Part shown: positions 1-53,469 of the stretch, piece by piece
Layout of the letters: every line of letters starts with the position of its first letter
Position numbering within the stretch: position 1 is the first letter of the stretch
Source: Azolla caroliniana
Taxonomy: Eukaryota; Plantae; Polypodiophyta
DNA: 64,000 nucleotides
Direction: 5' to 3'
Assembly (NCBI GenBank): GCA_043228905.1
Contig: JBHGNT010000013.1
Coordinates: forward strand, 12,338,001-12,402,000
Notes under the pieces: generated by a model
What the model saw: only the letters and a program-made list of their open reading frames with translations
Told to the model about the DNA's origin: nothing
The model's database searches: none
Program-made: the position numbers and the translations under genes

Positions 1-1549
1 CGAATTTCTTACCTTTCCGCAACAAGTGATAGAGCGGGTCCGCTATATGTGCATAGTGCGGAATCCATATGTGATAGAATGCACATGCACCCAGAAACCT
101 TCGGACTTCCGATGTTGACTCACATACTTCCTTCATAGCTTGAATCGCATCGATCTTTGTTGGTGACGGTCTTCGGCCGTAGGGTCCACATAGATGTCCG
201 ACCACCAATATTTCTTCTTGCCCGAATGCCGATTTCTCCCCGGAAAGTGTTAGGTGCACATCTTCTAGCTTTCGCAACACTTTCTCGCAATCATGAATAT
301 GGTCGACCACGAACTTTCGGCATCCCCGATCATCCATAGTCTCATCTTTTTCTTCCACCGCGCATCCTTTCATCGGAATGTCATCTAGAAACGGCATCGT
401 TATCTCCGGGATGCAATCTCGAAGCACCTTGTTCATCGCGTTCATCATATGTGCAACCGAGTTTGTCGCTCCTTGTGGTAGTGTGCACATTCGAACTAGT
501 CCTATCGGTGTCCGCATGGTAGTGATGTCTCGGCTCTCCACGGCTAGTTGGAATTGGTCATACCCCGAGTATAGGTCCCCGATGGAGTATATCGCACGTC
601 CGGCAAAAGCTTCCGCGAATTCGTCCACTATCGGACCGACTCCCGAGTTCCGGATCGTGACCTTGTTCACCGGTTGCAAGTCTTGGATGAATCGGAGTGA
701 CCCATTCTTCTTCGGAACCGTAAACCATCGATTTGAGTACGGAGCACTCGATGGCTCTAGAATCCCCATCGCCACCTTCTCTTTGAGTAAGTCGATGACT
801 TTCGGAATATGCGCCCGTGGCACCGGAATCGGCTTCAGGTTCCACGGTACATGATCAATCGTGAAAATCACCATCGGCTCCACTATCTTTGGATCAATGC
901 ATCCGATCTCCCTCGATGTGAACGCGAATGCTTTGCCATGTTGCTCCAACATCTCTCGAAACCGTTTTTCTTCTTCTTGTAAGAGGAACCCACCTCCACC
1001 GATCCGAAGTTTCTTCCGGGTCTCATCTGTGAAGGCATGTCCGATATCCACGGACTTCCGAAGTGTCGGATCTCCCGAGACTTCTTTCTTCTTTTGTTCG
1101 CTATCAGCGGGTAGTGGTCCCGCGGCCGGTTTCACCTTCTTCTCCACGGTCTTGTATTTCGTACTTACCATTGCTTCTTCTTTGCGGAGCGCATCCGGCC
1201 CCATTTTCGCAACGATCTCGTACATCTCGACCGATTCCACCGGGACTACCCGGTTCCCTTGGCTTTTATCTTCCGCAAGCTCTTCAAGCCGTTGTAGTGT
1301 ATTCCCATAGAACACTTCCTCGATCACTCCCACGATTTCTTCGTCTTCTTTTATTATTGATGCCGACCGTAACTTATCCTCCACTTGTCGGTATTGTTTC
1401 TTCATTCCTCCGGTTACGGCCGTGTACGTAGATGCCCCATCCGGGCCGATTCGTACTTGTTTTGCTCCGAGAGTTTTCTTCCTGTGTGGGGTATCAGGGC
1501 TTCTCGGACTATCACTTCCCCACTCCGCAACAGTCCGCTTTAAAAATCC
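1..1549 (-). CDS. Gypsy pol (RT) ORF in the -1 frame relative to gag-PR, open to the window edge
   Basis: Hand translation has no stops: KYKTVEKKVKP, WFTVPKKNGSLRFIQDLQPVNK, DLYSGYDQ, LPQGATNS, PFLDDIP (catalytic motif), EVRRFLGACAFY. It is absent from the ORF track, probably because it has no stop inside the window. Confidence 0.92.
1486..1549 (-). promoter_or_regulatory. Predicted -1 programmed ribosomal frameshift element (slippery heptamer plus H-type pseudoknot)
   Basis: Minus strand: G_GAT_TTT (1549-1543), spacer TAAAG, stem 1 CGGACTGTTGC (1537-1527) with GTGATAGTCCG (1515-1505), loop GTGGGG (1523-1518) complementary to CCCCAC (1491-1486). Confidence 0.8.
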
Positions 1550-3600
1550 ATTCTCACTTGGGACAAGAGTTCCCTCTTGTTCCTTTCGTGATTTGCCGGC
1601 ACCGTTAGGAATTGGACGGATTTCCCTCCGTTTTGGCTCCGAATTCGCGCAAAAGCCGCACCACTATCGAGCACCTTCGTCTCCATCCGTGAAGCCGTGA
1701 TAAAGGGTTGGCCGAGGATGACAGAATGTGAAACCTCATCCTGCACAAAGAAATTTTGGTCAATTTCGACATCCCCGATCTTTACCGTCACATCCGGACA
1801 AGCCGCAAATAGGTCTTCTGTCGTTTTCGTGGCTGCCCGAATCTTCCATCCATGGTTGGTGTTTATAGGCCACTTCCCCTTTCGGTAGAACTCCTTGGAC
1901 ATCAAGTTGATCTCCGATCCGTGATCAATCAATGCTAGCACGGGTTCTTTGATGTTGCCGATTCGGACCGGAGTCTCCGTAGTCGCACGTGCCCAGTGTG
2001 GCCTTGTATAGTGGGAGTTCGGAATTTCGCCTTCCACTTCGGTGTCGTTCATTGAAACGGTATTTGCATTCACCCTTGGAGCATTTTCCTCCGTACTTTG
2101 TCTCTTCCTTTTCACGAGATCCACGAGAAGATCGTGAAACTCCTTCTTCGCTATTCCGAGTAGTTCCCGCAGCGAAAAATCTACCCGGCTATCCAAGATT
2201 CTTTCCTCGAACACTCTTTTCAAGTCGGTTTGTTGTTCTATGTCCGAGGCGAGCTTGAATGCCGGAGTCGCCTTTTCTTTTCCCTTACCTCCGGAGTTCC
2301 AGCTTTCCGGTATCTTCGATGGTCCGGCCGCATCCTCCGTGCGCCGTCGTTTCTCGTCCACATACACCTCATGTAATTGACACAGGGCGTATATGCTATT
2401 CTTGTCGACAGGGCACTCCCATCCCGTAGCTTCCCGGACGCCTTCCGCGGTGTTTCGGATATCGTTGGAGTCGGTTTTCTCGGTGTTTCCTAGCACCTCC
2501 GGCCAGAAAGACGCCTTCGCTCCCGTTGACTCCCCGACACATATTCCCGCGGTTGTCGCATAGTTGCTTCTTGTCGCTAACTCCTCCTCGAGCACCTTCT
2601 TCATGCCGCCTTTCCGGAAGTTCGGTCGGAGTGGCTTCCGAGAGTCCATCGAATGAATCCGGTTTCCCTCGTAGTAGATGAGATCCCGTCGTAGCGCCTC
2701 CTTATGGTCGTCGCAATCCCTCCGATCGTGTTCGGCGCTATCGCACCATATGCACCGTCGATCCGTATATTTGGAGCTTGTGGGGCGGTCATCCGACTTC
2801 TTCACCATCGCGATCTTTAGATTCTCCATCTCCTTCAGCAGCTGCTCCACCGTAGACGCGTCGACTCCCTTCTCGGCCGTAATCTCCCGAGCCCTCGGTT
2901 GATGGTCTTCCAATCCCGTTCTCGGTTTCGGAATTGGTTCCAAAACCCTCTTTTCTTCGTTGGCAAGCCATTGCCCCCTCTTCGTGTACCGCGCGACGAT
3001 ATCCCGCACGATTTCCCATGTTTCGGTGAGGCCGCTTTCAGTGGTCGTGTCCTCAAGAAGCACTCCGAGATCTTTCCGGTCCCGGACGTCCACAGCTCGC
3101 AAAAACATGATGACTTTGTCCGGTGCAAGAATAGTTTGATCTCTCGCGGACAACCTCCCGAACCGACTTTCGAATGCCGAAAACACTTCGAGGACCTTCA
3201 ACCCCTTACCTGACGTTTCCACCCAATCCTCGAATCCCCTCCGCGTTGCCTTGGAGGAGTCCTCGATGGCAAACGTGGTCTTTAACGCCTCTTCGAATGC
3301 TTCCCACGTCGGATTTTGTTGTTGCAACCCGTGGATACTCCCTTGAAGCCCGTCGGTCGCCACCCGGTTAAAGGATGTCACTTGCAGTCCTTCCGAAGCC
3401 CGGCACCGGACCATCTCCGCCTTGTAGTCCTGCAAATATCGCGACACATCCTTACCATTAAATTGCCCGTTGCGTTGCACGAGCCGCTCTACTGATGCCG
3501 AAATCTCCGACATCGTGCGTTGTTCTTGAAGCATCCGTTCGAACATCGCCATCATATTGTTAGCTTGTTGAGCCTCCATCTCCTTGCCACCCGTCTTCAC
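1540..3600 (-). CDS. Gypsy Gag-aspartic protease polyprotein (first ATG at 3579)
   Basis: 686-aa ORF with zinc knuckle CIWCDSAEHDRRDC, protease ALIDHGSEINLM and ILGQPF. Ends MDF-stop at the slippery site. Confidence 0.93.
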   Translation of the reverse strand: MKTGGKEMEAQQANNMMAMFERMLQEQRTMSEISASVERLVQRNGQFNGKDVSRYLQDYKAEMVRCRASEGLQVTSFNRVATDGLQGSIHGLQQQNPTWEAFEEALKTTFAIEDSSKATRRGFEDWVETSGKGLKVLEVFSAFESRFGRLSARDQTILAPDKVIMFLRAVDVRDRKDLGVLLEDTTTESGLTETWEIVRDIVARYTKRGQWLANEEKRVLEPIPKPRTGLEDHQPRAREITAEKGVDASTVEQLLKEMENLKIAMVKKSDDRPTSSKYTDRRCIWCDSAEHDRRDCDDHKEALRRDLIYYEGNRIHSMDSRKPLRPNFRKGGMKKVLEEELATRSNYATTAGICVGESTGAKASFWPEVLGNTEKTDSNDIRNTAEGVREATGWECPVDKNSIYALCQLHEVYVDEKRRRTEDAAGPSKIPESWNSGGKGKEKATPAFKLASDIEQQTDLKRVFEERILDSRVDFSLRELLGIAKKEFHDLLVDLVKRKRQSTEENAPRVNANTVSMNDTEVEGEIPNSHYTRPHWARATTETPVRIGNIKEPVLALIDHGSEINLMSKEFYRKGKWPINTNHGWKIRAATKTTEDLFAACPDVTVKIGDVEIDQNFFVQDEVSHSVILGQPFITASRMETKVLDSGAAFARIRSQNGGKSVQFLTVPANHERNKRELLSQVRMDF

Positions 3601-3613
3601 GTCGGGTTCACCA
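3596..3613 (-). promoter_or_regulatory. Primer-binding site complementary to the tRNA-Trp 3' end
   Basis: Minus strand TGGTGAACCCGACGTGAA, 4 nt after the LTR. Its complement TTCACGTCGGGTTCACCA matches the 3' end of plant cytosolic tRNA-Trp(CCA) as I recall it. Confidence 0.85.
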
Positions 3614-3617
3614 ACTG

Positions 3618-4447
3618 TGTCGTGCCTTTCGGCTCCGGATCGTTGCGTGAGTCGGGTGGGAACCGCTGGGGTCTTGGACTAGGAGAAAGAAGTTCGTGAG
3701 ATAGAGATTAATTATGAGTAAATAGCAAAGAGAAAGATAAGAAACTCGTGAATCACACGAGTATACTATATTAATTGGTACTTAGGGTGTTAAGAGAGAA
3801 GTAGACGTATAAATCGTGAATCCCACGAATAATTTTTGTATTGATTAATCCTTAATCCAAATAATCAACAACTCTTTACATATTTCTCTCCTCCTTATAT
3901 AAGGAAGGAAGAGCTAAGCATGGCTTCATGCTTTTTTTTTACAAAAAGTGTTCATGTCCACTAAATGTGCATGTGATGCTTTTTTATTTCCTAAGTATAG
4001 GGCTCATGCACGCTAGATGTGCATGAGTTATTTTTAGTGTCTCGTGTTTTTTCTTTTTCATATATTAAAGAATACACGATTTACCTTTTAATAAAGGTAT
4101 GCATAAATAAAGGTCTTATACATATTAAATCTATATTTAAAGCACTTAAGATAAGTTAATGTAATGGTAAGGTTGGGGTTTGTCAACGTGGAGGTGCAGA
4201 GTTTGAATCACGCCTTGCGCAGTAGTGAGTATTTCCTTTCTTTTTACATTTATGTCTCTTTATCCGGCTCTTCCTTGCCGGTATGCCGTTTTCTTCCTTG
4301 CCGGTATGCCGTTTTCCTCCTTGCCGGTATGCCGTTTTTCCTCCTTGCCGGTATGCCGTTTTCTTCCGGTTCTCCCCGAGCACTCCATTCTCTATCCGGA
4401 GGGACAAAAATATAATTTTCACATAGTGTGCAACCTACACTACGACA
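3618..4447 (-). repeat. 5' LTR of Gypsy copy A (830 bp)
   Basis: TG...CA ends with inverted repeat TGTCGT/ACGACA. Homologous to 50249-50965 and adjacent to the PBS. Confidence 0.93.
4271..4363. repeat. Four copies of a 23-24 bp tandem repeat (TTCCTTGCCGGTATGCCGTTTTC) in the LTR U3 region
   Basis: Directly visible. Absent from the sister LTR at 50249-50965. Confidence 0.9.
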
Positions 4448-5547: not shown

Positions 5548-5578
<31 letters not shown>

Positions 5579-5654
5579 TAGATAGATAGATAGATAGATT
5601 ATATTATCGTCTTCGGAGATCAAATATGACCTATGAGACCAAAAATATTACATT

Positions 5655-8600
5655 TCACGTGATACGTGTGAAAGTGAGTAGTGACTCTCGATGTTCAAGA
5701 ACTTTACCAATGAATGTTGCAATCGAGAGTGCACATTGTGGTTGTGAGAGGAATTCATGCAAAGATTGGGCTCGATCGAAGAGATGTGGAAAGCATGGTC
5801 GAATATGATCAAAGGTAGAGCATTGTATCAAAGTGTGATACTCAGACTCGCGAACTTGTTTAGGGCAAAGTGTGCATAGCCGACCACTCTCATCACTTGT
5901 ACCCCAACGCCCTGTTTCACATCGCAATGCATGTGAGCTAAGTCGCATGGAAGCAATGGTTCGAATGGCAGATAACGGTATGGGCTCTAACATGTATGGA
6001 TGTGTACGATTCCCCCGTTCCGCAAAGAATATAGTTTTGTAGTTAGGTGCAACATGTGTAGTATAATGTGTGAAGCGTGAGCCTCCACATTTGTCCCATG
6101 TCATGATACATTGGCGTTGCAAAAATGCCTCATTTACAGAGGAATCTAATGATGCATCATGAAGCAAGTGTCTCGCATCCCATCTACCAAACCATTTTTC
6201 TATATCTTGCATCCAACCGGAACACAAAATTTTGCTTTTATGCGTCTTTTGGATCTTTTTGCTTGCTTCCCACGCAATTCTAGGAAGTCGATGTGAGGGA
6301 CTTTTTTGAACCTTAAGCATGTATTCAACAACCCTTTCCATGGCCATGATCTCAATGGGAAGCAATCCTGTCTCAAGGAGGAGGAGGGTGTAGGGTGTTT
6401 GTTTCTTAACTTGTAGAAACTTGGTAAGAAAATGCTTTTGGACATTTTCAAACTCTTTCCACATAGACTTAGGGATGCTACCGCCCCATACTTCCACCCC
6501 ATAGAGAAGAATTGGTGTCACCAAAGTGTCAAAAAGATATTTCTTGAGGACCCAACACTTAATATCTCCAAGATTGCATGTGTTCTCAAATGCATAGTAT
6601 GCTCGTTTGCCCGCCTCTAAGCGGCGTGTAGCACATTCATTCCATCTATGATTTGAAGGAACTTCAAGGCCAAGATATTTGAAGCTTTCCACACATTCAA
6701 GTGGCTCATTGTTGTACATAATGCATGGTTTATCTCTTTTTTGGCTCTTCACAAGCATAATCTTTGTTTTAGAGCTATTGACACTTAATTTAGTATGCAT
6801 GCAAAATTTTTCCAATGCCTTCATAAGCTTTTGTGCATCTCCTAAAGTATTTGCAAAAAGCACTACGTCATCTGCATATAGCAAAAGCATAATCACAACA
6901 TTCCCAATGGCAACTTCTTCAACACATTCTTCCTTTGCAAACTTGGTAACCATTTCTTCCAATTCATCAATGCATAGACCAAATAGTGTTGGTGAGAGTG
7001 GGCATCCTTGCTTAACACCAATAGTGCTTTTGAAAAAATCTGAAAGTTTATCTCGCATGCGCACACAACATATAACCTTCTCATAAATTCGGGAAATTGC
7101 AAGCATATATTCACTTGGCACCTCAAGTTCTTCCATTCGCCTCCAAAGATGCTCACGAGGTACCATATCAAAAGCTTTCTTGAAGTCTACAAAGCAACAA
7201 TATAAACCTTTACCTCTAAGGCGACTTTCCTCCATTAATACTCGAAGGGTGATAAGGTGATCAATGGTGCTATGGTGTTTTCGAAAGCCAGCTTGTCCAT
7301 AAGCTCTCTTACCACTTTTTTCAGCCCATACACTTATCTTTGATTCCATTATACATCCAAATAGTTTTGCCATTAATGAGCCAACCATGATGGTTCGATA
7401 GTTGTTTACATTATTTATATCTCCACCTTTATGTAAAGGTTTGATCCAATTTGTAGTCCAATCGTACGGCATACCATGTTGCAATGCATCATTAAACATA
7501 TCGCTTATCCATATATGTGCTTCCTTTCCCGTCCATTTGGGCATTTCAGCCTTTATACATTGAAGATCGCTTGCCTTTCGAGAGGCCAATTTCTTAAGTC
7601 CTATGCATATATCTTCAATTGTAAAGAAGGAAGGCATATGTGAAAGAGAACCATAACACATCATCTTTCCGGCAAGAGATAACTCATATAAATTCTTACA
7701 ATGCATAGACAAGTCGTGAAGAGTTAAGTCACCATAACTCTCAACACGTTTTCCCTTTAGATTTCCCCAAAATTTAGCACATGCATGTGCTTTCTCTTGC
7801 GTTTGGATAAATTGTTGAGTAACTTCCCATATTCTTCTCTTTCTTTGAATAAGCCTTTTATACTCATGCAAATGCTTTTGGTAATTCTCTTTATCCTTAA
7901 CTACATCCAAAACCATAACGCACTTTCGAGCTTCACGACATTCTTTATCAAACCATTTTTTCCTAAGTTTCTTGGTGCATTTCCAAGATGTGCGGTTGGT
8001 CGAAAAACATTTGTTTGTACATGAGAGAATGACTTTCTTGAAAGCTTCCCATTTGCATTCTAGTGTGGCACCATGTTGTATCTTTGTCATTTGTAACATA
8101 TCCTCAACCATCTTGGAATACATGGGTGCTCGCTTAAGGTTCATGCTCAAGTGCGGTTGTTTATTATCTTCAATAGCCTTCTCACAATCAAACCTATGCA
8201 TACATTTGAGATCAATACATAAAGGCCTATGATCTGATTCCGGTGTCCATTCACCAAGTGAGAATTTATGTATACGATCCAAAATACCTTCGGAAAGTAG
8301 CACATAATCAATCACACTATTTCCGTTGTATTTTCTACATGTAAAACCATTAGTGTTGGGCCATAAGGAAATACCATTTGCAATAAGCAATCCGGTACTA
8401 TTGCACATTTGTAGGAGTAACTTCCCAAATTGGTCCGGATCTTTTTCATCGCTAGAAGAGCGGTTATACATTTGCATATCCTCTTGCATCCTTGAGATAT
8501 GTGGCATGAAAGATTCTTGTGAATCAAGTTGGAAACTTCTTGTACGAGCATTCATGTCACCAAAGACAATAACTTCCCCTTTGGATTTGAAATAAGCAAT

Positions 8601-9035
8601 ATCATCTTCTAGATTGGCAAACGGTTGATCTTTATCCAAACAAGCATAAAAGTTAGAATCTTGATGAGGAATGTAACATCCAACAACAAAAGTGGGCAAA
8701 TCATTAGGTGTTTCTATTTTGAGCCATATGTAGCATTTATTTTCATCATTTTTTATGATTGACACATATTTCTCTATTTCCTTCTTAATCAAACATGCCA
8801 CCCCTCCTTGTCCTCTTCTTTGTCTTGGATTTTTCTTCCATATCAAAGAGTGTACATTATAGTTTCCTAAACCTTGAATCCTTTGAGTATCATGCTCCCA
8901 TGTTTCAACAAGAAGTGTGATATCCGAGTCATTGGTGAACTCCTATATGCCAAATCCCGCATTCCATGGGTATCCATTGCAATTCCAAAAGCATAGTCGT
9001 AAAAGGCGTGGGTTAGTCTCATAGATCACGTGTCC
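5655..9035 (-). CDS. LINE ORF2: APE endonuclease, RT and C-terminal zinc finger (one premature TAG at 8945-8943; track ORF 5655-8846)
   Basis: Motifs FWNCNG, VETW, GDMNART, IDY, SDHRP, FVDFKKAFD, GVKQGCPLSPTLF, LLYADD, FKYLG, CTLC...EYH...C. Confidence 0.92.
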
Positions 9036-33673: not shown

Positions 33674-36100
33674 CCAATAGAGGCCAAAATTAGTCTATGA
33701 GTCAAATCGTGCCATATTAAAACAAAAATAAATCCTCTACATTTCCTACAGCTCCATGATCATTATCTTAATGCATCTGTTGGAATGATTTTTGAGATGG
33801 TTTACAAGCATGAAGTGCATAGCTAATATGTATGAGAGTGAGGAGAGATATAGCTGAAAAAAACTGAACAACGAAGAGAGAGATGAGCAAGAGTACACAA
33901 TTTGCTACCAGCATTGTAATCAATCATTGCTCTTTGTAATCACGTGAAGATAAAATTTGAGAATTATTTTGTACTATGGTTATTTTCAGGCATCGCGATT
34001 GGCTGAAGAATTGAAGTTTAACATACTTAATAACATTAAAAAGTATGGAGAAACATATTATGTTAGATTTGGGAAGTTTGTAAGATTGATAGTGTTCGAT
34101 CCACTCATGGTCCAACAAATTATTGCTCAAAATGCAGATTGCTATGAGAAACCATCTTTTATTACTGCATTGGATATTCTTGGAGATGGTATTTTCAGTG
34201 TAAGTGGCAAAGATTGGATGCCTCAGCGTCAGATATTGGCAAAGTGTTTCATCATGAAAGAGCTCAAGGTTCGAAGGCCACATTCAATTATACGCACAAT
34301 TATTTTTTCATCCGAAATTCTAAATGTAGATTAGATCATCACAAAATGGATATTGTGTTTTATTGACAGGAATACTTTGGTGATATAAAAAAATGTTCAG
34401 AATCTGAGGTCAGGAGTTGGATTGTGCTAGGAACAGAAACAGTTGATATCCACAAAAGGTTTCTAAGTTTGACAGTGAAATTGATTGGCCATATTCTGTT
34501 TGATGAACACATTGAAACCGGTCTTGCGTGCTTCATTTATGAAGGATTTGATCGGTATCTTCACAACTGCAGGGATGTTCTTTGTGGTCGTATATTCAAC
34601 TTCTTTGGATTTAGGTATGGATTAGAAGACACGTATTTTAGTTTGAGCATCTCATGATCATCATTGAAACAAACATTCAGCAGCAAATAGTTGGTATACA
34701 ATTTAGATGGTGGGCAACAATTATTATCTATGCGTTTACAAGAATCTTTGAAGGCTTTTCAAAAATTTCAGTTTTTCTTCTATATTCAGTATCCATTTTG
34801 GAAAAAACCTTTTATGACCATCTTGACTTGCTCAGTTTTTTATCTTGAGAAGTGAATTCTATATGAACTTCTAATACATATGGACTAGTATGCTAGAGAG
34901 TTTGTGAAAAATGAGTTGTACAGTGGGGATGACAGAAGCATTTTTTTATTAGTCTTTCAATGCATCCATGTAGCCTTCAGCTACTGATGTTCTGCATGCT
35001 CAAGGATTGTCATACTGATGTAACTTGGTTTAGTTTCTTTAAAGATTCTTTGGCTCAATGATGATGCATATTCCTATTTAAGATCAGAATTCCATCTACA
35101 AACTTGGTTTTTATGTTCTATCTGTCCATCCTTGTGTCTATATGTTGTAGCTGAACATATTTAAATGAGCTGTCCAAATCGCATTATGCTATCCTTGCGT
35201 TTATATGTTGTAGCTGACCATGTTTAAATGAGCTGCCCAAATCACATTATGCTAATTGGATGCAATCTGTTGTATACATGCTTGGTTTGTGTGTGACAAA
35301 CTACATATTTTATGCACAGGTGGAAGAGCAGGGAAATGCTAAAGGATGAAGTCAGGATCATAGAACTAGTTGAGCAAATGATAACAAGAAGAAAGGAGCA
35401 GATGTCATTGAACGCAGAAGTGGAATCTGTGAGGCAAGAGAAAGTTATTGACACGATGATTAATGCAGCAAAGGGCAGGAAGGATTTCAGCGAGAAACAA
35501 GTGATAGACAATAGTGTAACACTCCTTTTGGCAGGGCATGAAACGACTGCAAACCTTCTTACATGGACAGTGTATTTGCTCGCCATTCATCCAGAGTGGC
35601 AGAAGCAAGCACATGCCGAGGTCGAAGGATTCAGTAACCTGGATTTCAAGGAAGTAAGCCAACTCAAGACAATCAGTATGATTCTTTGGGAATCTTTACG
35701 ACTTTTCCCGCCACAGCCCATCATTGGCCGTATTTGTGTGCGTGAAAACGTCGTTGGTGGTCTTGTGATTCCGGAGAAGATGGAGATTGTTGCTTCTCTT
35801 TTTGCTCTTCATTGCAACAGAGATATATGGGGAGACAATGCTGATGAGTTCCAACCAAAGAGATTTGCAAATGGCATCAATAAGGCATGCAAAAATCCCT
35901 TGGCATTCCTGCCCTTTGGCTCGGGCCCAAGAACATGTATTGGGCAGTCTCTGGCATTGTTGGAAGCACGAGTCATCTTATATTTTATGCTCAAGACATA
36001 CTCATGGGAACTTAGCCCTTCTTATCAGCATTCTCCTGATATTACCTTGACATTACAACCTCGTTTCGGGATGCCCATTATTCTTACAAGAAGGAACTAA
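26954..36100 (+). CDS. Cytochrome P450, CYP72 clan; exons 26954-27094, 33990-34268, 34370-34614, 35320-36100 (about 481 aa)
   Basis: AGHETT (I-helix), ESLR, PKRF and FGSGPRTCIG (heme) motifs. All three GT-AG junctions are phase-compatible (0, 0, 2). Exon 1 WIWTPWHLSQSCREQHISG matches the clan W-x-x-P-x9-Q-G-I-x-G spacing and is less certain than exons 2-4. Confidence 0.85.
27669..33700 (-). mobile_element. Tandem stack of truncated or decayed RTE/RTEX-like LINEs separated by (GA)n/(GATA)n, inside P450 intron 1
   Basis: 3' fragments at about 27757-27900, 28070-28770, 31395-31790 and 33261-33640; a decayed, internally deleted ORF1+ORF2 copy at about 28790-31130; and a family-2 fragment at 31834-33234. 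All are on the minus strand and homologous to 5573-10170. Confidence 0.88.
31959..33113 (-). pseudogene. 5'-truncated ORF2 C-terminus of a second LINE family
   Basis: LRISSHQLEIENG...RICRLCHIEIKDEYHFTCKC zinc finger, bounded by (GA)n on both sides. Confidence 0.85.
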
Positions 36101-41922: not shown

Positions 41923-44380
41923 TTAGAACGATTTGGACGGCGTGCCATTGGTAGCCGTCAGTTTGATATTGGCTCTTGCCGATGCCATCGTGACTGATGT
42001 CCGGGGCGTGAACCGCTTGTCCTTAACAGTACCATCGTTCCCCGCCAACACCATGTACTTGTCCTTACGCGTGAGCTCAGTGCAACAAAACCCTAACGCA
42101 TCCGCGAGCTGCTTCTGCACGGCCCGGGCGACCTCCACGCTCGTCTTCCCGCCCCCGCCCACCGTCTCCTCCTTGGTGAGCCTCTCCAAGAACAGGATCT
42201 CACATTCGGGCTTCGGGTTCATGAGGTAGAAGAAAGAGTCGAGGGCCTTGTAGCCCCTCGCGCTTGTACCGTGGAACATACCCACCTTCAGCTTCATCCC
42301 AACCGGGACAATATGCTCCGTGAGCTCGGCAAACAAGGGGCTGAACCTCAAGAGGTACGGCTCCCGGCAGGTTGTACCCTCCGGGCAGACAAACAGATCC
42401 TCTTCTTTCTCGAGGAGCTTCGCGATGAGGCGGCGGTCTTCTTCCCGATCCCTGGTCAGAGATGCCGTCTTGATGGGAGACATGAGCTCCGAGACCCAGC
42501 TAACGGAGTACGCAAGGGCCCGGACCTTCCTTCGCAGTCCCACACACATATAAGTAGGGTCGAGGAGTGTCCTGTGCGTGCTAACGAAGAGGATCCCTTG
42601 CTTGTTTCCTGCGGGAAGGGGCAATGGCGGAGCTCCTTTCACTCTGATGCACATGCCCAGCAGTGCCGCCAATGGCATCCCTACCTCTAATGGGAGACAA
42701 AGAACCATGAGGATTCTTATGAAGGCGAGCATCAATCCGAAGGGTGCCCATAGGAACACTGCGAGCGCGGTTAATGGTGTCGGCCTCTTCGCTAACCTTC
42801 CATCGTGGAATGTTAATGGCTTCCAATACTGTTCTCGGGGTACTGTGTCTACTGCTGCTGAACTTCCATCTGCATTTACTATATATGCTTCCTGCAGAGA
42901 TTTATCACAACAAATGAAAATTTACCGCAAAGATGGTCGATTAGCTTGGAAATCGTAAGTTCTCTGCATGAAAATGGAAAGCATCTCTGAAGAATTCAAC
43001 AGATAACATGAACTCTGAAGAATTCAACAGATAACATGAACTCGGAAGAATCCAACAGATAACATGAACTCTGAAGAATCCAACAGATAACAGGAACTCT
43101 GAAGAATTCAACAGATAACAGGAACTCTGAAGAATCTGATGGCTTTACAAAAAGGATTTGCCTTCATCTCGCAAGTATGGAGGAATTTAAGGAACATATA
43201 ATCATTCTCGGAAATACAGCTGCTGGGCGGTTATGGTTTAAACTATAAATTTGAGGGTCATACAATTACGCGCAGGCTAAATAAAGAATGGCTATGGCAT
43301 TCCTACTGTGTTCCTCTTGCAAGTATGAAGAAAAAGAGATAATCATTCTCGGAAACACAGAAGCTGCGTGGTTATGGTTTACTCTGAGTTTCACCTCTTA
43401 TCCGTCACACGCAATTGTTAAGGACGGCCAAATAAAGAATGGCTATGGCATCCTACACACAGAACAGTACTTCGAGCAACGTGGCTATGACGAATATAAA
43501 TACAGATCATTCTTCCCTCTGCTTCAATATGTATTAGCTATGGAGAATTAAAGATAAGACAGATATACAGTTTTTACTCTGTCGTATGCAGCCTAAGCTC
43601 AAGGATGGCCTTTTCTCTTTAGCTATGGTGAATCAAACAAAGGAAAGAACAGTTTTGCGTATGAGTTACCTTACTGAAAGACATGAAAGGATAGTCGGAT
43701 TCTCTCCCTCCCAGAGCAATGTCCGGTTTTTCATCGCCAAAAAGCTTCTTCACAGCTTTCAACTTCCTCTTCCCCATCAGAACACCTGTCTCTCGCGCAA
43801 CAAGACCTGAGCAGAAACCATAGCCAGTAACATGAAGCTCAGTCCCTAAAACATCGTCCACACCAAGATGTTCTCTGAGGAAATACTCCACCATAACTCG
43901 AGGATACGAAGTGACCACGTATCTCTTGCTGCAAGACATGAAGACTTCGAAGGTCTGGCTATGGAGATCTTCGAGGAAGAACTTTGGTAAGACGGCTTTA
44001 GAGACACCTTGGACTTGGGAGAAGGAAAGGCCAGCAGTGGAGATGAAGACGAAGATCTGAAGAGAGAGAGAAGGGTCGCAGAGAGAGAGTAGAAAGAGGA
44101 GAGGATAGAGAGCAAGAAGCAAGAAGGCTCGCAGGGGGCTTCCTGCTTCAAGAGAGAGAAGCAAGAAGTAAGGGAAAGGGCTGGAAGACCTCAGAAGGGT
44201 TGAATTGAGGCTCGTTATGATCTTCTGCGTAGATCGACCGAAGGTCGAGCAAGAATCAATGGAAGGAAAAGGACGAAATTCGGCCTTCTGTGGCTTCTTC
44301 GTTGTCTTCGTGTGCTTTCTGAGTGTAGGTTTGATTTTACCAGGGGATCTGTTACAGTCGCAGTCGAAGGTGGCTGCCAT
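41923..44380 (-). CDS. GPAT: sn-2 glycerol-3-phosphate acyltransferase (land-plant GPAT1-8 family); exons 44380-43670 and 42891-41923 (559 aa)
   Basis: TLLRSSSPFPYF, KAVLPKFFLED, VLGTEL, FHDGRL, HRTLLDP, CPEGTTCREPYLLRFS, LTRKDKY. Phase-0 intron AAG|GTAACT...GCAG|GAA. Confidence 0.95.
42985..43135. repeat. About 5.4 copies of a 28-bp minisatellite in the GPAT intron
   Basis: Unit CTCTGAAGAATTCAACAGATAACATGAA. Confidence 0.92.
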
Positions 44381-50248: not shown

Positions 50249-53200
50249 GTCGTGCCTTTCGGCTCCGGATCGTTGCGTGAGTCAGGTGGGAACCACTGAG
50301 GTTTTGGACTAGGAGAAAGAAGAATATGAGATAAGGCTAGTATTGAATAGGTGGAAAGAGAGGTAAGTTATGAATCTCGTGAATCCCACGAGTTTAGTGT
50401 ATTTAATCAATATTTAGATAGTAAGAGACAATTAAGATGACAAATTCGTGAATCCCACGAATATATTATATTGGTCAATCCTTACAAAATAATCAACCCC
50501 CATATACCTCTTTCTCTCCTCATATAAGGATGGGAGAGACTAAGCATAGCTTCTTGCTTTTCCTAAAGTGTTCATGCACACTAAATGTGCATGAGTTACT
50601 TTTTCCACTATGCTTTTATTTCTTAAATATAGTGCTCATGCACGCTAGATGTGCACGAGTATTTTTTTATTGGTTTATATTTTTCTTGTAAATAAAGTAT
50701 TCACGCACTCTAAAAATGCATGATTTACCTTTTAATAAAGGTAGGCATAAATAAAAGTCTTATACCTATTAAATCTATATTAATAATACTTATGATAAGT
50801 TAATACAATGGTAAAGTTTTGGTTTATTTACATGGAGGTGCAGGGTTCGAATCCTACCCTATGCATGTAACAATATTTTTAATATTTTCTTTTATTTATT
50901 TATGCGTACTACAATCGGATATATTTTTTACATATTTCATGTAGTGTGCGAATTACACTACAACACTCGCCCCCTCTGAACCCGCACATCCTCTGGTATG
51001 TGCTGAAGTTCTCGATGCATGTTATTCGTCTTCATTCGTAGCACTCTTCGATTCTCCCCTTATGTTGACTATGAGTTGTAGTCCACTTTCTTCGCTTTCC
51101 GTATCACCGTGATCTTTGTTTGGTTGCTCCTCGATGTCGGTCTTGTCTAGGGTTACATAGGGTTCTTCGTCAGTCCGCTTCTTGAAAATCTTCACCCGTT
51201 TCCCCGCTATAGGCACCCGTAGTACTGTTCCATCCAACTCGCATAGTCGGTAAGTTCCGTTGTTGAAAACTTTCCGAACCTCGTATGGCCAGAAACACCT
51301 TTTTGCGAACTTCCATATCGTTGTATGTTAATGATCCAGACTACTGTCATAGACAATCACCCAATCTCCTTCTTCAATCTTCCCCGGTCATAGTCGATGC
51401 TTTGTGTCGAATCGGCTTTTGTTCCGGAATCACGCTTCCTGTTGTCGGCATGTTGCTTTTGCTATGTCTTCCGGTCTTCCCTCCAGTTGTCGTATCCGGA
51501 CCGCTAATAGTTCTTCTCGGCTCATCTCTTCCTTCCACGGCAGCAGTGCCCATGTCGCAATTGCAGTTTCCCTCGGCATTACTGGTGCTTGTCCGGTCAT
51601 AAGTTCGGCCGGCATAAAACTGGTCACGGAACTGTGCGTCGTACGATCCGCCCATAGTGCATACATGAGCATCTGTGGCCAATCCTTCACCCTTCCGTTG
51701 CATGCTTTTGCAAGTGCTTTGACGATTGGACTATGTCCTCGTTCGATCTTCCCGTTAGCTTCCAGATTGTATGCCGTTGTTAGTGTTAACCGAAATCCAT
51801 GTTTGGTGAAGAATTCCCTGGCTTTATCAGACTCGAGTTCTCCTCGATCCGCAATCACTTGTCCTACGCACCCGTACCTGCAAAACACTTCTTCCAAAAG
51901 AAATTGGCATACCACAGAACACGTTTTCCTCCATAGCGCTCGACCTTCTACTTGGTTTGTGAGATCTTCCTGAGCTAACACCAAGTACTTCTTTTGTCCG
52001 ATCCCGGTTGGCATGCCTACAATGTTGACCATCCATTTGAAGTTGATTGTCGGTGAGAATGTCAGATGTAACTCATCTCGGTGTTGAACCCCGGAGTAGT
52101 CTTGGCATTTCTCGCAGCTTTCCGTGAACTCCGCGACATCTTTGTACATATTCTTCCACCAATATCTTTGCTTCATCTTCACAAATGTTGCCCATGTTCC
52201 TTGATGTCCAGCCCAATCGGATTCGTGAAATTCGGAGATTATCTGGTTTCATTGCTCTTTTGTCCCGACTACTCGAAGTGGTATGCCATCCGGTCTTTTC
52301 GGCTCCCTCCATATTAATCCATTTTCGGACTTTTCAGCTCCCTCCATGCCATCCGGTCTTTTCGGCTCCCTCCAAGAAGAACTTTCGGACTTGCCGCTTC
52401 TTACTTCGGATCTCAGCTCTCTTCTCTTTATTGTCTGATGATTCCTCGATTTCTTGTAGCACTTTCCCGATCAAAAAGCTTTCTCCCTCGTATTCTTCTT
52501 CCCGGAGTTCTCGGATTACGTTCACCCGGCATATGTGCTCCGAAGCAAAGTAGTCTTCGGAAATTTCTTCATTATCGGATTCGGTTATGTCGTCTCCGAA
52601 CCGCACCCTTGATAGCATATCCGCTACCGCGTTGTCTTTTCCAGAGATGTGTCGTACCTCTGGATTAAGTGACTTAACATATGCAATCCACCTTAGCATA
52701 GCCACATCCGGTATAGTACAACACTACATCATCCCGAGTATCGGAAGACAATAAGTTTCGATCACTACTTCGGCTTCGATCAAATAATCTCGATCCGATT
52801 TGATTGCCGACACGACTCCCCATAATTCTCTTTTGACTTGTGCACACCCGCGTTGCCTTTCGTTGAGAACCTTTGCTCCGAATCGGATCGGATATCACGA
52901 ACCATCTGAGTTGGCTTGATTGATGACCCATCCGATTCCGGTTGGACTTGTGTCAACCGTTACTATGATCGGTCGGTCATAGCTCGACTTCTTAAGTGAT
53001 TCCGCCCTCTGTAGTGTTTTCTTAAGCTTCTTCATGGCTTTGGTATGTTCCGGTCTCCACTCGAACTTCTTACCCTTCCGCAACAAGTGATAGAGTGGGT
53101 CCACAATATGTGCATAGTGCGGAATCCATATGTGATAGAATGCACATGCTCCAAGAAACCTTCGGACTTCGGATTGTGACTTGCATACTTCTTTCATAGC

Positions 53201-53469
53201 TTGAATCGCATCGATCTTGGTTGGTGACGGTCTTCGGCCGTAGGGCCCACATAGATGTCCGACTACCAATATTTCTTTTTGTCCGAATGCCGATTTCTCT
53301 CCAGAAAGTGTTAGGTGCACATCTTCTAACTTTCGTAGCACTTTCTCGCAATCCCGAATATGGTCGACTATGAATTGTTAGCATCCCCGACCATCCATAG
53401 TCTCATCTTTTTCTTCCACCACGCATCCTTTCATCGGAATGTCATCTAGGAACGACATCGTTATCTCCC
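50249..53469 (-). mobile_element. Ty3/Gypsy copy B, same family as copy A: 3' LTR 50249-50965, PPT 50966-50977, decayed RT-RNase H-integrase, 5'-truncated
   Basis: RT at about 53065-53469 closely matches 1-410. VDTSPTGIGW, HISGKDNAVADMLSR, YWWKNMY...CEKCQ, ADRGEL, ANGKIERGH. Minus-strand PPT AGAGGGGGCGAG. Confidence 0.93.

Follow-up and report, generated by a model that had tools for sequence, protein, structure and literature searches.

We analysed a 64,000-nucleotide stretch of DNA of the fern Azolla caroliniana (GCA_043228905.1, contig JBHGNT010000013.1, positions 12,338,001 to 12,402,000 of the forward strand), hereafter called the window, which carries a Ty3/gypsy retrotransposon of the long terminal repeat (LTR) class on its minus strand. 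The protease (PR) and the reverse transcriptase (RT) of this element are encoded in different reading frames, and the junction between them is most probably a gag-pro/pol recoding site, at which ribosomes would shift to the −1 frame on the heptamer G_GAU_UUU with the help of a downstream H-type pseudoknot. The layout of the open reading frames (ORFs), the identities of the encoded domains, the conservation of the heptamer and the stop codon, and the covariation of both stems carry this assignment. An initial annotation of the window had already proposed a −1 signal between protease and RT, and it is supported by the conserved heptamer, the nearby stop, the spacer and the two conserved, covarying stems. 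The signal is a conserved and previously unannotated member of a well-known recoding class, and the mechanism that we propose for it is ordinary −1 frameshifting.

The protease–RT junction in the window

We observed that ORF1 ends with ...AUG GAU UUU UAA on the minus strand and that RT follows in the exact −1 frame, which confirms to the base what the initial annotation had read there. The heptamer, the 5-nt spacer, the 11-bp stem with its G-U pairs, and the loop sequence GUGGGG with CCCCAC 13 nt further on were also all present as it had described them. The parts of the junction are listed below.

1540..3579, minus strand: ORF1, gag-protease (ATG at 3579; 679 amino acids (aa) from the ATG; ORF of 686 codons)
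1543..1549, minus strand: slippery heptamer G_GAU_UUU, in the gag-PR frame, read from the sequence
1540..1542, minus strand: ORF1 stop codon UAA, abutting the heptamer, read from the sequence
1..1663, minus strand: beginning of ORF2 in the −1 frame, 554 codons free of stops up to the window edge, which cuts ORF2
1542-1538, minus strand: spacer UAAAG, 5 nt, from the heptamer to stem 1
1527..1537, minus strand: 5′ arm of stem 1, CGGACUGUUGC (minimum-free-energy fold; covariation)
1516-1526, minus strand: loop of stem 1, 11 nt, which holds GUGGGG
1505..1515, minus strand: 3′ arm of stem 1, GUGAUAGUCCG (minimum-free-energy fold; covariation)
1518..1523, minus strand: 5′ strand of stem 2, GUGGGG, within the loop of stem 1
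1486..1491, minus strand: 3′ strand of stem 2, CCCCAC, 13 nt past stem 1 and complementary to GUGGGG

Past the junction, the 0 and +1 frames are closed by many stops. The −1 frame encodes a linker of ~270 aa, followed by RT (RVT_1 at about 194-718). Stem 1 of the window has 11 bp, including 3 G-U pairs, and is present in the minimum-free-energy fold; the heptamer is 5 nt away from this 11-bp stem and 6 nt away from the 8-bp core that is conserved in the relatives. The loops of the predicted pseudoknot would measure 3 nt, 2 nt and 13 nt, lengths that are compatible with an H-type fold. Taken alone, the single window sequence is not convincing (the shuffle p for its 6-bp loop pairing is 0.07), and it is the comparison of relatives that settles the point.

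The assignment of the protease to the Gag frame was examined by sequence and by structure. Pfam aspartyl-protease families matched the C-terminal domain of ORF1 below threshold, and a profile of 16 relatives found the protease part of Ty3 Gag-Pol as its best, weak match among the PDB sequences (E = 0.027). An AlphaFold model of the domain had a core predicted local distance difference test (pLDDT) score of 63-90, and a Foldseek search of the PDB with this model returned retropepsins as all of its top matches (the Ddi1, XMRV, EIAV and HIV proteases, from E = 2.5e-6). Judged by its modelled fold, the domain is a retropepsin, and the protease is therefore in the Gag frame, as had been claimed. 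The active-site motif of this protease is D-H-G-S in place of the usual D-T/S-G; it is kept in most of the family (alignment A1), with DSGS in P0075 and DYGS in P0035.

For the domains downstream we used L001, a 98%-identical contig. Its ORF2 of 1241 aa encodes RT, RNase H (RH), an integrase zinc domain and the integrase (IN) core (rve), in this order, and a domain search of it detected neither a chromodomain nor an extra RNase H.

Conservation of the junction and of the slip site

A protein search for relatives returned gag-PR proteins of 660-760 aa with 41-98% identity. When the search was run without a length filter, many of the relatives, with identities as low as ~30%, ended in ...DF no more than a few residues away from the end of the query. 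In total, 94 loci were fetched from metagenomes and from the genome of the liverwort Riccia sorocarpa, 91 of them having a protease match and a stop.

We observed GGAUUU(U/C) abutting the ORF1 stop in 74 of these 91 loci, so that the heptamer and the stop are conserved together. Of the 62 loci that have an RT match, 57 encode RT in the −1 frame, among them relatives whose gag-PR identity is as low as ~50%. Each of the remaining 5 either is a degenerate copy that acquired indels later on or has a second element at the locus. We also looked for a continuous gag-pol frame in intact relatives, and found an in-frame continuation in 0 of the examined loci.

Across the junctions the ORFs overlap by 10-217 nt, and the overlap contains the heptamer. 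In 8 of the 49 distinct junctions, the −1 frame opens just 10 nt before the stop, and therefore the frame change must occur on the heptamer. The nucleotides of the slip site are nearly fixed in this set: the heptamer is GGAUUUU in 48 junctions and GGAUUUC in 1, the Asp codon is GAU in all 49, and the Phe codon is UUU in 48 of them. The codon before GAU is one of 11 different codons for 11 amino acids, G-ending in every case, and all three stop codons are used (UAA 19, UAG 22 and UGA 8). We concluded that the constraint on the slip site acts on the nucleotides and not on the protein.

Distant subfamilies have comparable sites. An in-frame G_GAU_UUU is present in L092 (a Riccia sorocarpa chromosome copy; 3933-4006), L066:935-1006 and L076:2500-2571, an in-frame G_GGU_UUU in L078:3723-3794 and L080:1569-1640, and an in-frame G_GUU_UUU in L093:4195-4260. 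All these heptamers are placed 6 nt before a homologous stem, and in several of the subfamilies the 0-frame stop comes 5 codons later, within the loop of stem 1. These subfamilies have GUACCAUUG/CAAUGGUAC as stem 1 and GCGGGA/UCUCGC as stem 2. As the distant subfamilies keep a heptamer-type site together with both stems, the architecture predates the clade of the window copy.

Compensatory changes in stem 1 and stem 2

Stem 1 was analysed in alignment A2, which consists of 43 distinct junctions aligned with MAFFT and is free of gaps in columns 1-45, which cover everything between the heptamer and the 3′ arm of the stem, both included. The spacing from heptamer to stem was identical in all 43 junctions. 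We found that 80.8% of the cells in stem 1 pair, compared with 22-42% for slid partners, that 7 of the 11 pairs change on both sides, and that the covariation score was reached by 0 of 500 shuffles. A second alignment of 56 sequences included the distant subfamilies and was aligned by a covariance model, so that it is fitted to the structure; here the 10-pair helix was 87% paired, both partners were seen to change in 8 of its 10 pairs, and none of the measures was reached by any of 500 shuffles. Scoring 11 pairs in both alignments gave 7/11 and 9/11 pairs with changes on both sides, and 81-82% pairing against 22-48% for slid partners. One compensatory change, in L004, turns ACU/AGU into GCC/GGC and with it Thr/Ser into Ala/Gly. 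Since compensatory changes alter the amino acids on both arms, the pairing of stem 1 is not a by-product of coding.

For stem 2, a downstream pairing of 4-8 bp is possible for all 32 distinct loop types, and in 30 of these the partner begins 10-15 nt past stem 1. The 3′ strand of stem 2 is out of register in the MAFFT alignment A2 as well as in the covariance-model alignment A3, and the pairing was therefore scored by anchored scripts with shuffle and permutation controls. The summed helix score was 265.5, compared with 200.2 ± 6.7 when the downstream sequence was shuffled (0 of 2000) and 240.0 ± 6.7 when downstream segments were exchanged among relatives (6 of 20000 permutations), so that the own partner fits better. 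The variants include multi-base switches on both strands: GUGGGG/CCCCAC, ACAGGG/CCCUGU, GCGGGG/CCCCGU, GGGACA/UGUCCC, AUGAGGGU/ACCCUCAU and GCGAGA/UCUCGC. Thus, of the covariation that the initial annotation had proposed to look for in the two stems, that of stem 1 was found, and stem 2 co-varies between clades, with a register that slides and in a test that ignores kinship.

It is conceivable that frameshifting takes place with the stem 1 hairpin as its sole local stimulator, and that the G-run of the loop and the downstream C-run serve protein binding, a long-range contact or packaging. The support for stem 1 is far stronger than that for stem 2; the latter has just 4-8 bp, its shuffle p ranged from 0.002 to 0.57 in single sequences, and an RNAduplex energy test of cognate versus non-cognate partners, made on the close clade only, gave a weak difference (p = 0.03). 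Moreover, the plant-virus elements that share the heptamer use bulged hairpins with long-distance partners and not compact pseudoknots (PMC4737148). However, the loop bases G30 and G31 of A2 are invariant, with G30 falling on the third position of codons whose amino acid varies, and the partner changes with the loop across clades, the multi-base switches included, while its distance stays at 10-15 nt. We consider it unlikely that the hairpin acts alone, and an H-type pseudoknot that includes stem 2 is likely, though not proven.

Several observations weigh against the full signal as we read it. The heptamer is non-canonical and allows full re-pairing for the A-site tRNA only. The fold energy of the window sequence, taken singly, is ordinary (z = −0.41 versus shuffles), and its minimum-free-energy fold has a small alternative hairpin around CCCCAC. 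Only the 8-bp core of stem 1 is conserved, the closing C-G and the two innermost pairs being clade-specific. Stem 2, which is short, is displaced in register by up to 2 nt from one clade to another, and the linker differs in length. The permutation tests on stem 2 were made with our own scripts and ignore shared ancestry.

When the 64-kb window was searched with the covariance model built from the relatives, a single match was obtained (minus strand, 1478-1549; 76 bits; E about 1e-13). On the loci, the same model gave 1 match per junction, with the exception of L090, where a weak minus-strand match over the same site was also obtained (E 0.98). No family in Rfam matched the junction site.

Proposed course of frameshifting and other explanations

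We propose the following course of events at the junction. Most ribosomes would terminate at the UAA and yield Gag-protease. A minority would be held up by the RNA structure 5-6 nt downstream, which would resist unwinding, at the moment when tRNA-Asp occupies the P site on GAU and tRNA-Phe the A site on UUU. This structure would consist of a stem of 8-11 bp, whose loop would pair with the C-rich stretch 10-15 nt further on to form an H-type pseudoknot. Both tRNAs would then slip one base back to GGA_UUU, and the ribosome would read on through ...Asp-Phe-Leu-Lys-Arg... to RT, RNase H and integrase. The minor product would be a Gag-PR-RT-RH-IN fusion, the protease output would equal that of Gag, and only the replication enzymes would be rationed. 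The slippage itself, its efficiency, and the formation of stem 2 together with stem 1 are steps that we infer from the compared sequences.

A further possibility is that a short intron is spliced out of some of the transcripts, which would join the two ORFs. Ogre elements use an intron at exactly this junction (PMC6317226), and gene predictors put introns here in Riccia. In the annotation of R. sorocarpa (GCA_046195345.1), the copies L092 and L093 appear as 'hypothetical proteins' with lengths of 1861 and 2036 aa, in which DUF4100, RT and integrase are fused. We found that these fusions are spliced gene models: the genome encodes RT in the −1 frame with respect to the protease, and the introns of the models span this change of frame. 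The fusion models are probably an annotation artefact of the frameshift site, and the predicted introns differ among gene models. Furthermore, the ORFs of the present family overlap or abut with nothing between them, whereas Ogre has ~274 bp between its ORFs, and what is conserved is an in-frame slippery heptamer with a covarying stem rather than splice-site motifs. Splicing is a highly improbable explanation of the junction.

Equally improbable is that RT-RH-IN is translated independently, by internal initiation or by reinitiation past the ORF1 stop. Prokaryote-style gene callers do begin ORF2 at a downstream AUG, but the position of this AUG is not conserved (48 to 174 nt past the stop, depending on the locus), and upstream of it the −1 frame stays free of stops all the way back to the heptamer. 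In addition, the Pol of retroelements enters particles as a fusion to Gag, which counts against independent initiation.

That the frame change is an indel private to a dead copy, or an error in its sequencing, with a continuous gag-pol in the functional relatives, was ruled out: random frameshifts are common in plant LTR retrotransposon copies (PMC6317226), and the Riccia proteins of 1800-2000 aa resemble a fused Gag-Pol, but the −1 arrangement is conserved across the relatives with no in-frame continuation, and the Riccia fusions are the spliced models described above. Stuttering of the RNA polymerase on the U-run, which would add one U in part of the transcripts and give the same protein, could find a substrate in the five consecutive U of the window copy (GGAUUUUUAA), but it can be practically dismissed, as the GGAUUUC UAG clade has just 3 U in a row, the G_GGU_UUU G and GGAUUUU C/G variants have 4, and a stem at a fixed distance of 5-6 nt would be needless.

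A candidate −2 sub-lineage

At three loci from three samples (L065:2836-2903, L072:2498-2566 and L094:1598-1665), we observed RT-RH-IN in the +1 (= −2) frame relative to gag-PR. L065 and L072 are 77% identical over 5.3 kb; ORF2 is open for ~1000 codons in both of them, and in L072 both ORFs are long. Compared with their nearest −1 relatives, the three loci have the heptamer (A)G_GUU_UUU and a spacer that is 1 nt shorter, and they keep stem 1 as well as an 8-bp stem 2. In a −2 slip, the A-site tRNA-Phe would re-pair on UUU in both variants, whereas a +1 slip would allow full re-pairing only in L072. The sequence (A)G_GUU_UUU is the −2 shift site of arteriviruses. According to a published report, the best spacer for −2 shifting is 1-2 nt shorter than the one for −1 shifting (PMC3458567). 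A scan of viral contigs for the motif of the −2 variant gave no match.

From these sequence features, it may be that the sub-lineage switched from −1 to −2 frameshifting, losing one nucleotide of the spacer and acquiring a different heptamer, a reading that we put forward tentatively and hold to be somewhat doubtful. If it is true, the sub-lineage would represent a natural, protein-independent and pseudoknot-driven −2 frameshift in a cellular retroelement. Comparing it with its −1 sister clades would then also put the mRNA-tension model, according to which shortening the spacer promotes −2 shifting, to an evolutionary test (PMC3458567).

Identity and anatomy of the element

Besides the parts of the junction, the following features of the element were identified in the window.

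3615..4447, minus strand: 5′ LTR, ~830 nt, TGTCG...GACA (94.6% identity to the 3′ region of L001, 5844-6649)
3596..3613, minus strand: primer-binding site (PBS) TGGTGAACCCGACGTGAA (exact match to a 12-nt probe, 4 nt past the LTR end)
Within ORF1, minus strand: DUF4100 region (domain match)
2713-2754, minus strand: CCHC zinc knuckle, CX2CX4HX4C (motif in ORF1)
1912-1932, minus strand: protease motif LIDHGSE (in ORF1)
1702-1719, minus strand: protease motif ILGQPF (in ORF1)

We take the PBS, TGGTGAACCCGACGTGAA, to be complementary to the 3′ end of tRNA-Trp. The 5′ LTR contains, in its U3 region, 4.3 tandem copies of a 23-nt unit at 4269-4367. The layout of the element is compact: the gag ATG lies 17 nt past the PBS (window 3579-3613, minus strand), and in L001 the 3′ LTR starts within the last codons of pol (5844-5853), which places the polypurine tract within coding sequence. 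Next to the LTRs stand the 4 nt CCGT (5′ LTR of the window copy) and ACGG (3′ LTR of L001), one flank being available per copy, and both fit NCGN. The named relatives of the element come from the liverworts Riccia sorocarpa and R. fluitans.

The domain order GAG-PR-RT-RH-IN, the TG...CA ends of the LTR and the PBS are those of Ty3/gypsy elements (Metaviridae). The label 'plant Ty3/Gypsy' given to the element at first was right, and it can be refined: the element belongs to the non-chromovirus group of Ty3/gypsy and is like Phygy in its PBS, its flank motif and its layout.

A second, 5′-truncated copy of a related element occupies 50249-53468 of the window (minus strand) and is devoid of the frameshift junction. 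Its RT fragment (53062-53468) is 91% identical to window positions 1-407; an integrase ORF spans 51430-52182, and the 3′ LTR, which occupies 50249-50853, shares just 76% identity with the LTR of the first copy. Just outside the first element, at 5548-5599, lies a microsatellite, (AGAT)13, with a (CT)n run after it. The neighbourhood further includes a LINE-type ORF (endonuclease and RT, 1063 aa) at 5655-8846 (minus strand), a cytochrome P450 exon at 35312-36100 (plus strand), and a gene for a RAM2-like glycerol-3-phosphate acyltransferase (HAD and acyltransferase domains) at 41923-44380 (minus strand). The neighbouring genes are consistent with a land-plant nuclear genome of ~35-40% GC, and the inserted elements have ~50% GC.

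Significance of the signal

The above results add a well-supported, family-wide −1 signal to the LTR retrotransposons of land plants. They also indicate that the slip sites of plant RNA viruses, GGAUUUU and GGGUUUU, serve an endogenous plant retroelement as well, and this use of viral slip sites points to the ribosomes and tRNAs of plants rather than to viruses. The signal probably explains the spliced 'fusion' Gag-Pol models in liverwort genome annotations, and the 72-nt RNA motif, absent from Rfam, can be used for the correct annotation of such elements. Finally, the family is a source of natural variants with which the direction and the efficiency of frameshifting can be tested: the heptamer comes in three forms, the stop directly adjoins it or follows 5 codons later, the spacer measures 6 or 5 nt, and RT is in the −1 or −2 frame.

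Comparison with known systems

The initial annotation had described G_GAU_UUU as the shift site of dianthoviruses and umbraviruses. Dianthoviruses shift on G_GAU_UUU. The umbravirus part of the claim is documented: GGAUUUU is the site of pea enation mosaic virus 2 (PEMV2), where it promotes −1 shifting in wheat-germ extract, and it is interchangeable with the luteovirus site GGGUUUU (PMC4737148). In umbra-, diantho- and luteoviruses, the slip site adjoins the stop and lies 5 nt from the stimulator (PMC4737148). The present signal is like these viral elements in its heptamer G_GAU_UUU (or the luteovirus G_GGU_UUU in the distant relatives), in the adjacent stop, in the spacer of 5-6 nt and in the plant translation system. 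It differs from them in the partner of the loop, which lies 10-15 nt downstream in 30 of the 32 loop types and would give a compact H-type pseudoknot, whereas that of the viruses is distant and 3′-terminal. No conserved asymmetric bulge is present in the stem, homology at the sequence level is absent, and it is a retrotransposon and not an RNA virus that carries the signal. Hence, the signal resembles these viral elements at the slip site but is no member of their family.

In alpharetroviruses, PR is in the gag frame and is made at the level of Gag, and only RT-IN is rationed. The heptamer of Rous sarcoma virus, an alpharetrovirus, is A_AAU_UUA and differs from G_GAU_UUU. Its structure is unrelated to the one described here, and its host is a vertebrate. 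The likeness lies in the −1 shift at the end of the Gag frame and in a structured stimulator with a pseudoknot-type interaction (PMC5009743).

The Ty3/gypsy elements of animals and fungi that have −1 frameshift sites and, in non-seed plants, Tcn1 and Selgy also have overlapping ORFs with pol in another frame (PMC5009743; PMC6317226). Their overlap, however, is between GAG and PROT, so that the protease is rationed together with RT. For plants, a 2003 survey gave only +1 arrangements, as far as it is summarised in a 2016 review of recoding (PMC5009743).

Among the described plant lineages, Phygy (REXdb, from Physcomitrella patens) has a tRNA-Trp PBS, a 4-bp target-site duplication with the NCGN motif and a length of 7656-9968 bp (PMC6317226, supplementary file 5); its ORF organisation was reported as 'not determined' in this REXdb survey of 2019 (PMC6317226). 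Our literature coverage, which was incomplete, yielded no prior description of frameshifting in Phygy or in retrotransposons of mosses or liverworts. The present element is similar to Phygy in its putative tRNA-Trp PBS, in flanks that fit NCGN, in coding sequence that fills almost the whole internal region, and in the lack of a chromodomain and of an extra RNase H. With ~7.3 kb it is slightly shorter than the published 7656-9968 bp.

The placement of the signal between protease and RT had been called unusual, which was an overstatement. In the Tat clade, Retand is organised as GAG-PROT:stop:RT-RH-INT and Ogre as GAG-PROT:intron:RT-RH-INT (PMC6317226, supplementary file 5). As both regulate at the same junction, the placement is less unusual than first thought. 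Like the present element, Retand and Ogre are plant non-chromovirus Ty3/gypsy elements that down-regulate RT-RH-INT at this domain junction; they do so by an in-frame stop or a spliced spacer of ~274 bp, whereas the element described here has overlapping −1 ORFs and a slippery site.

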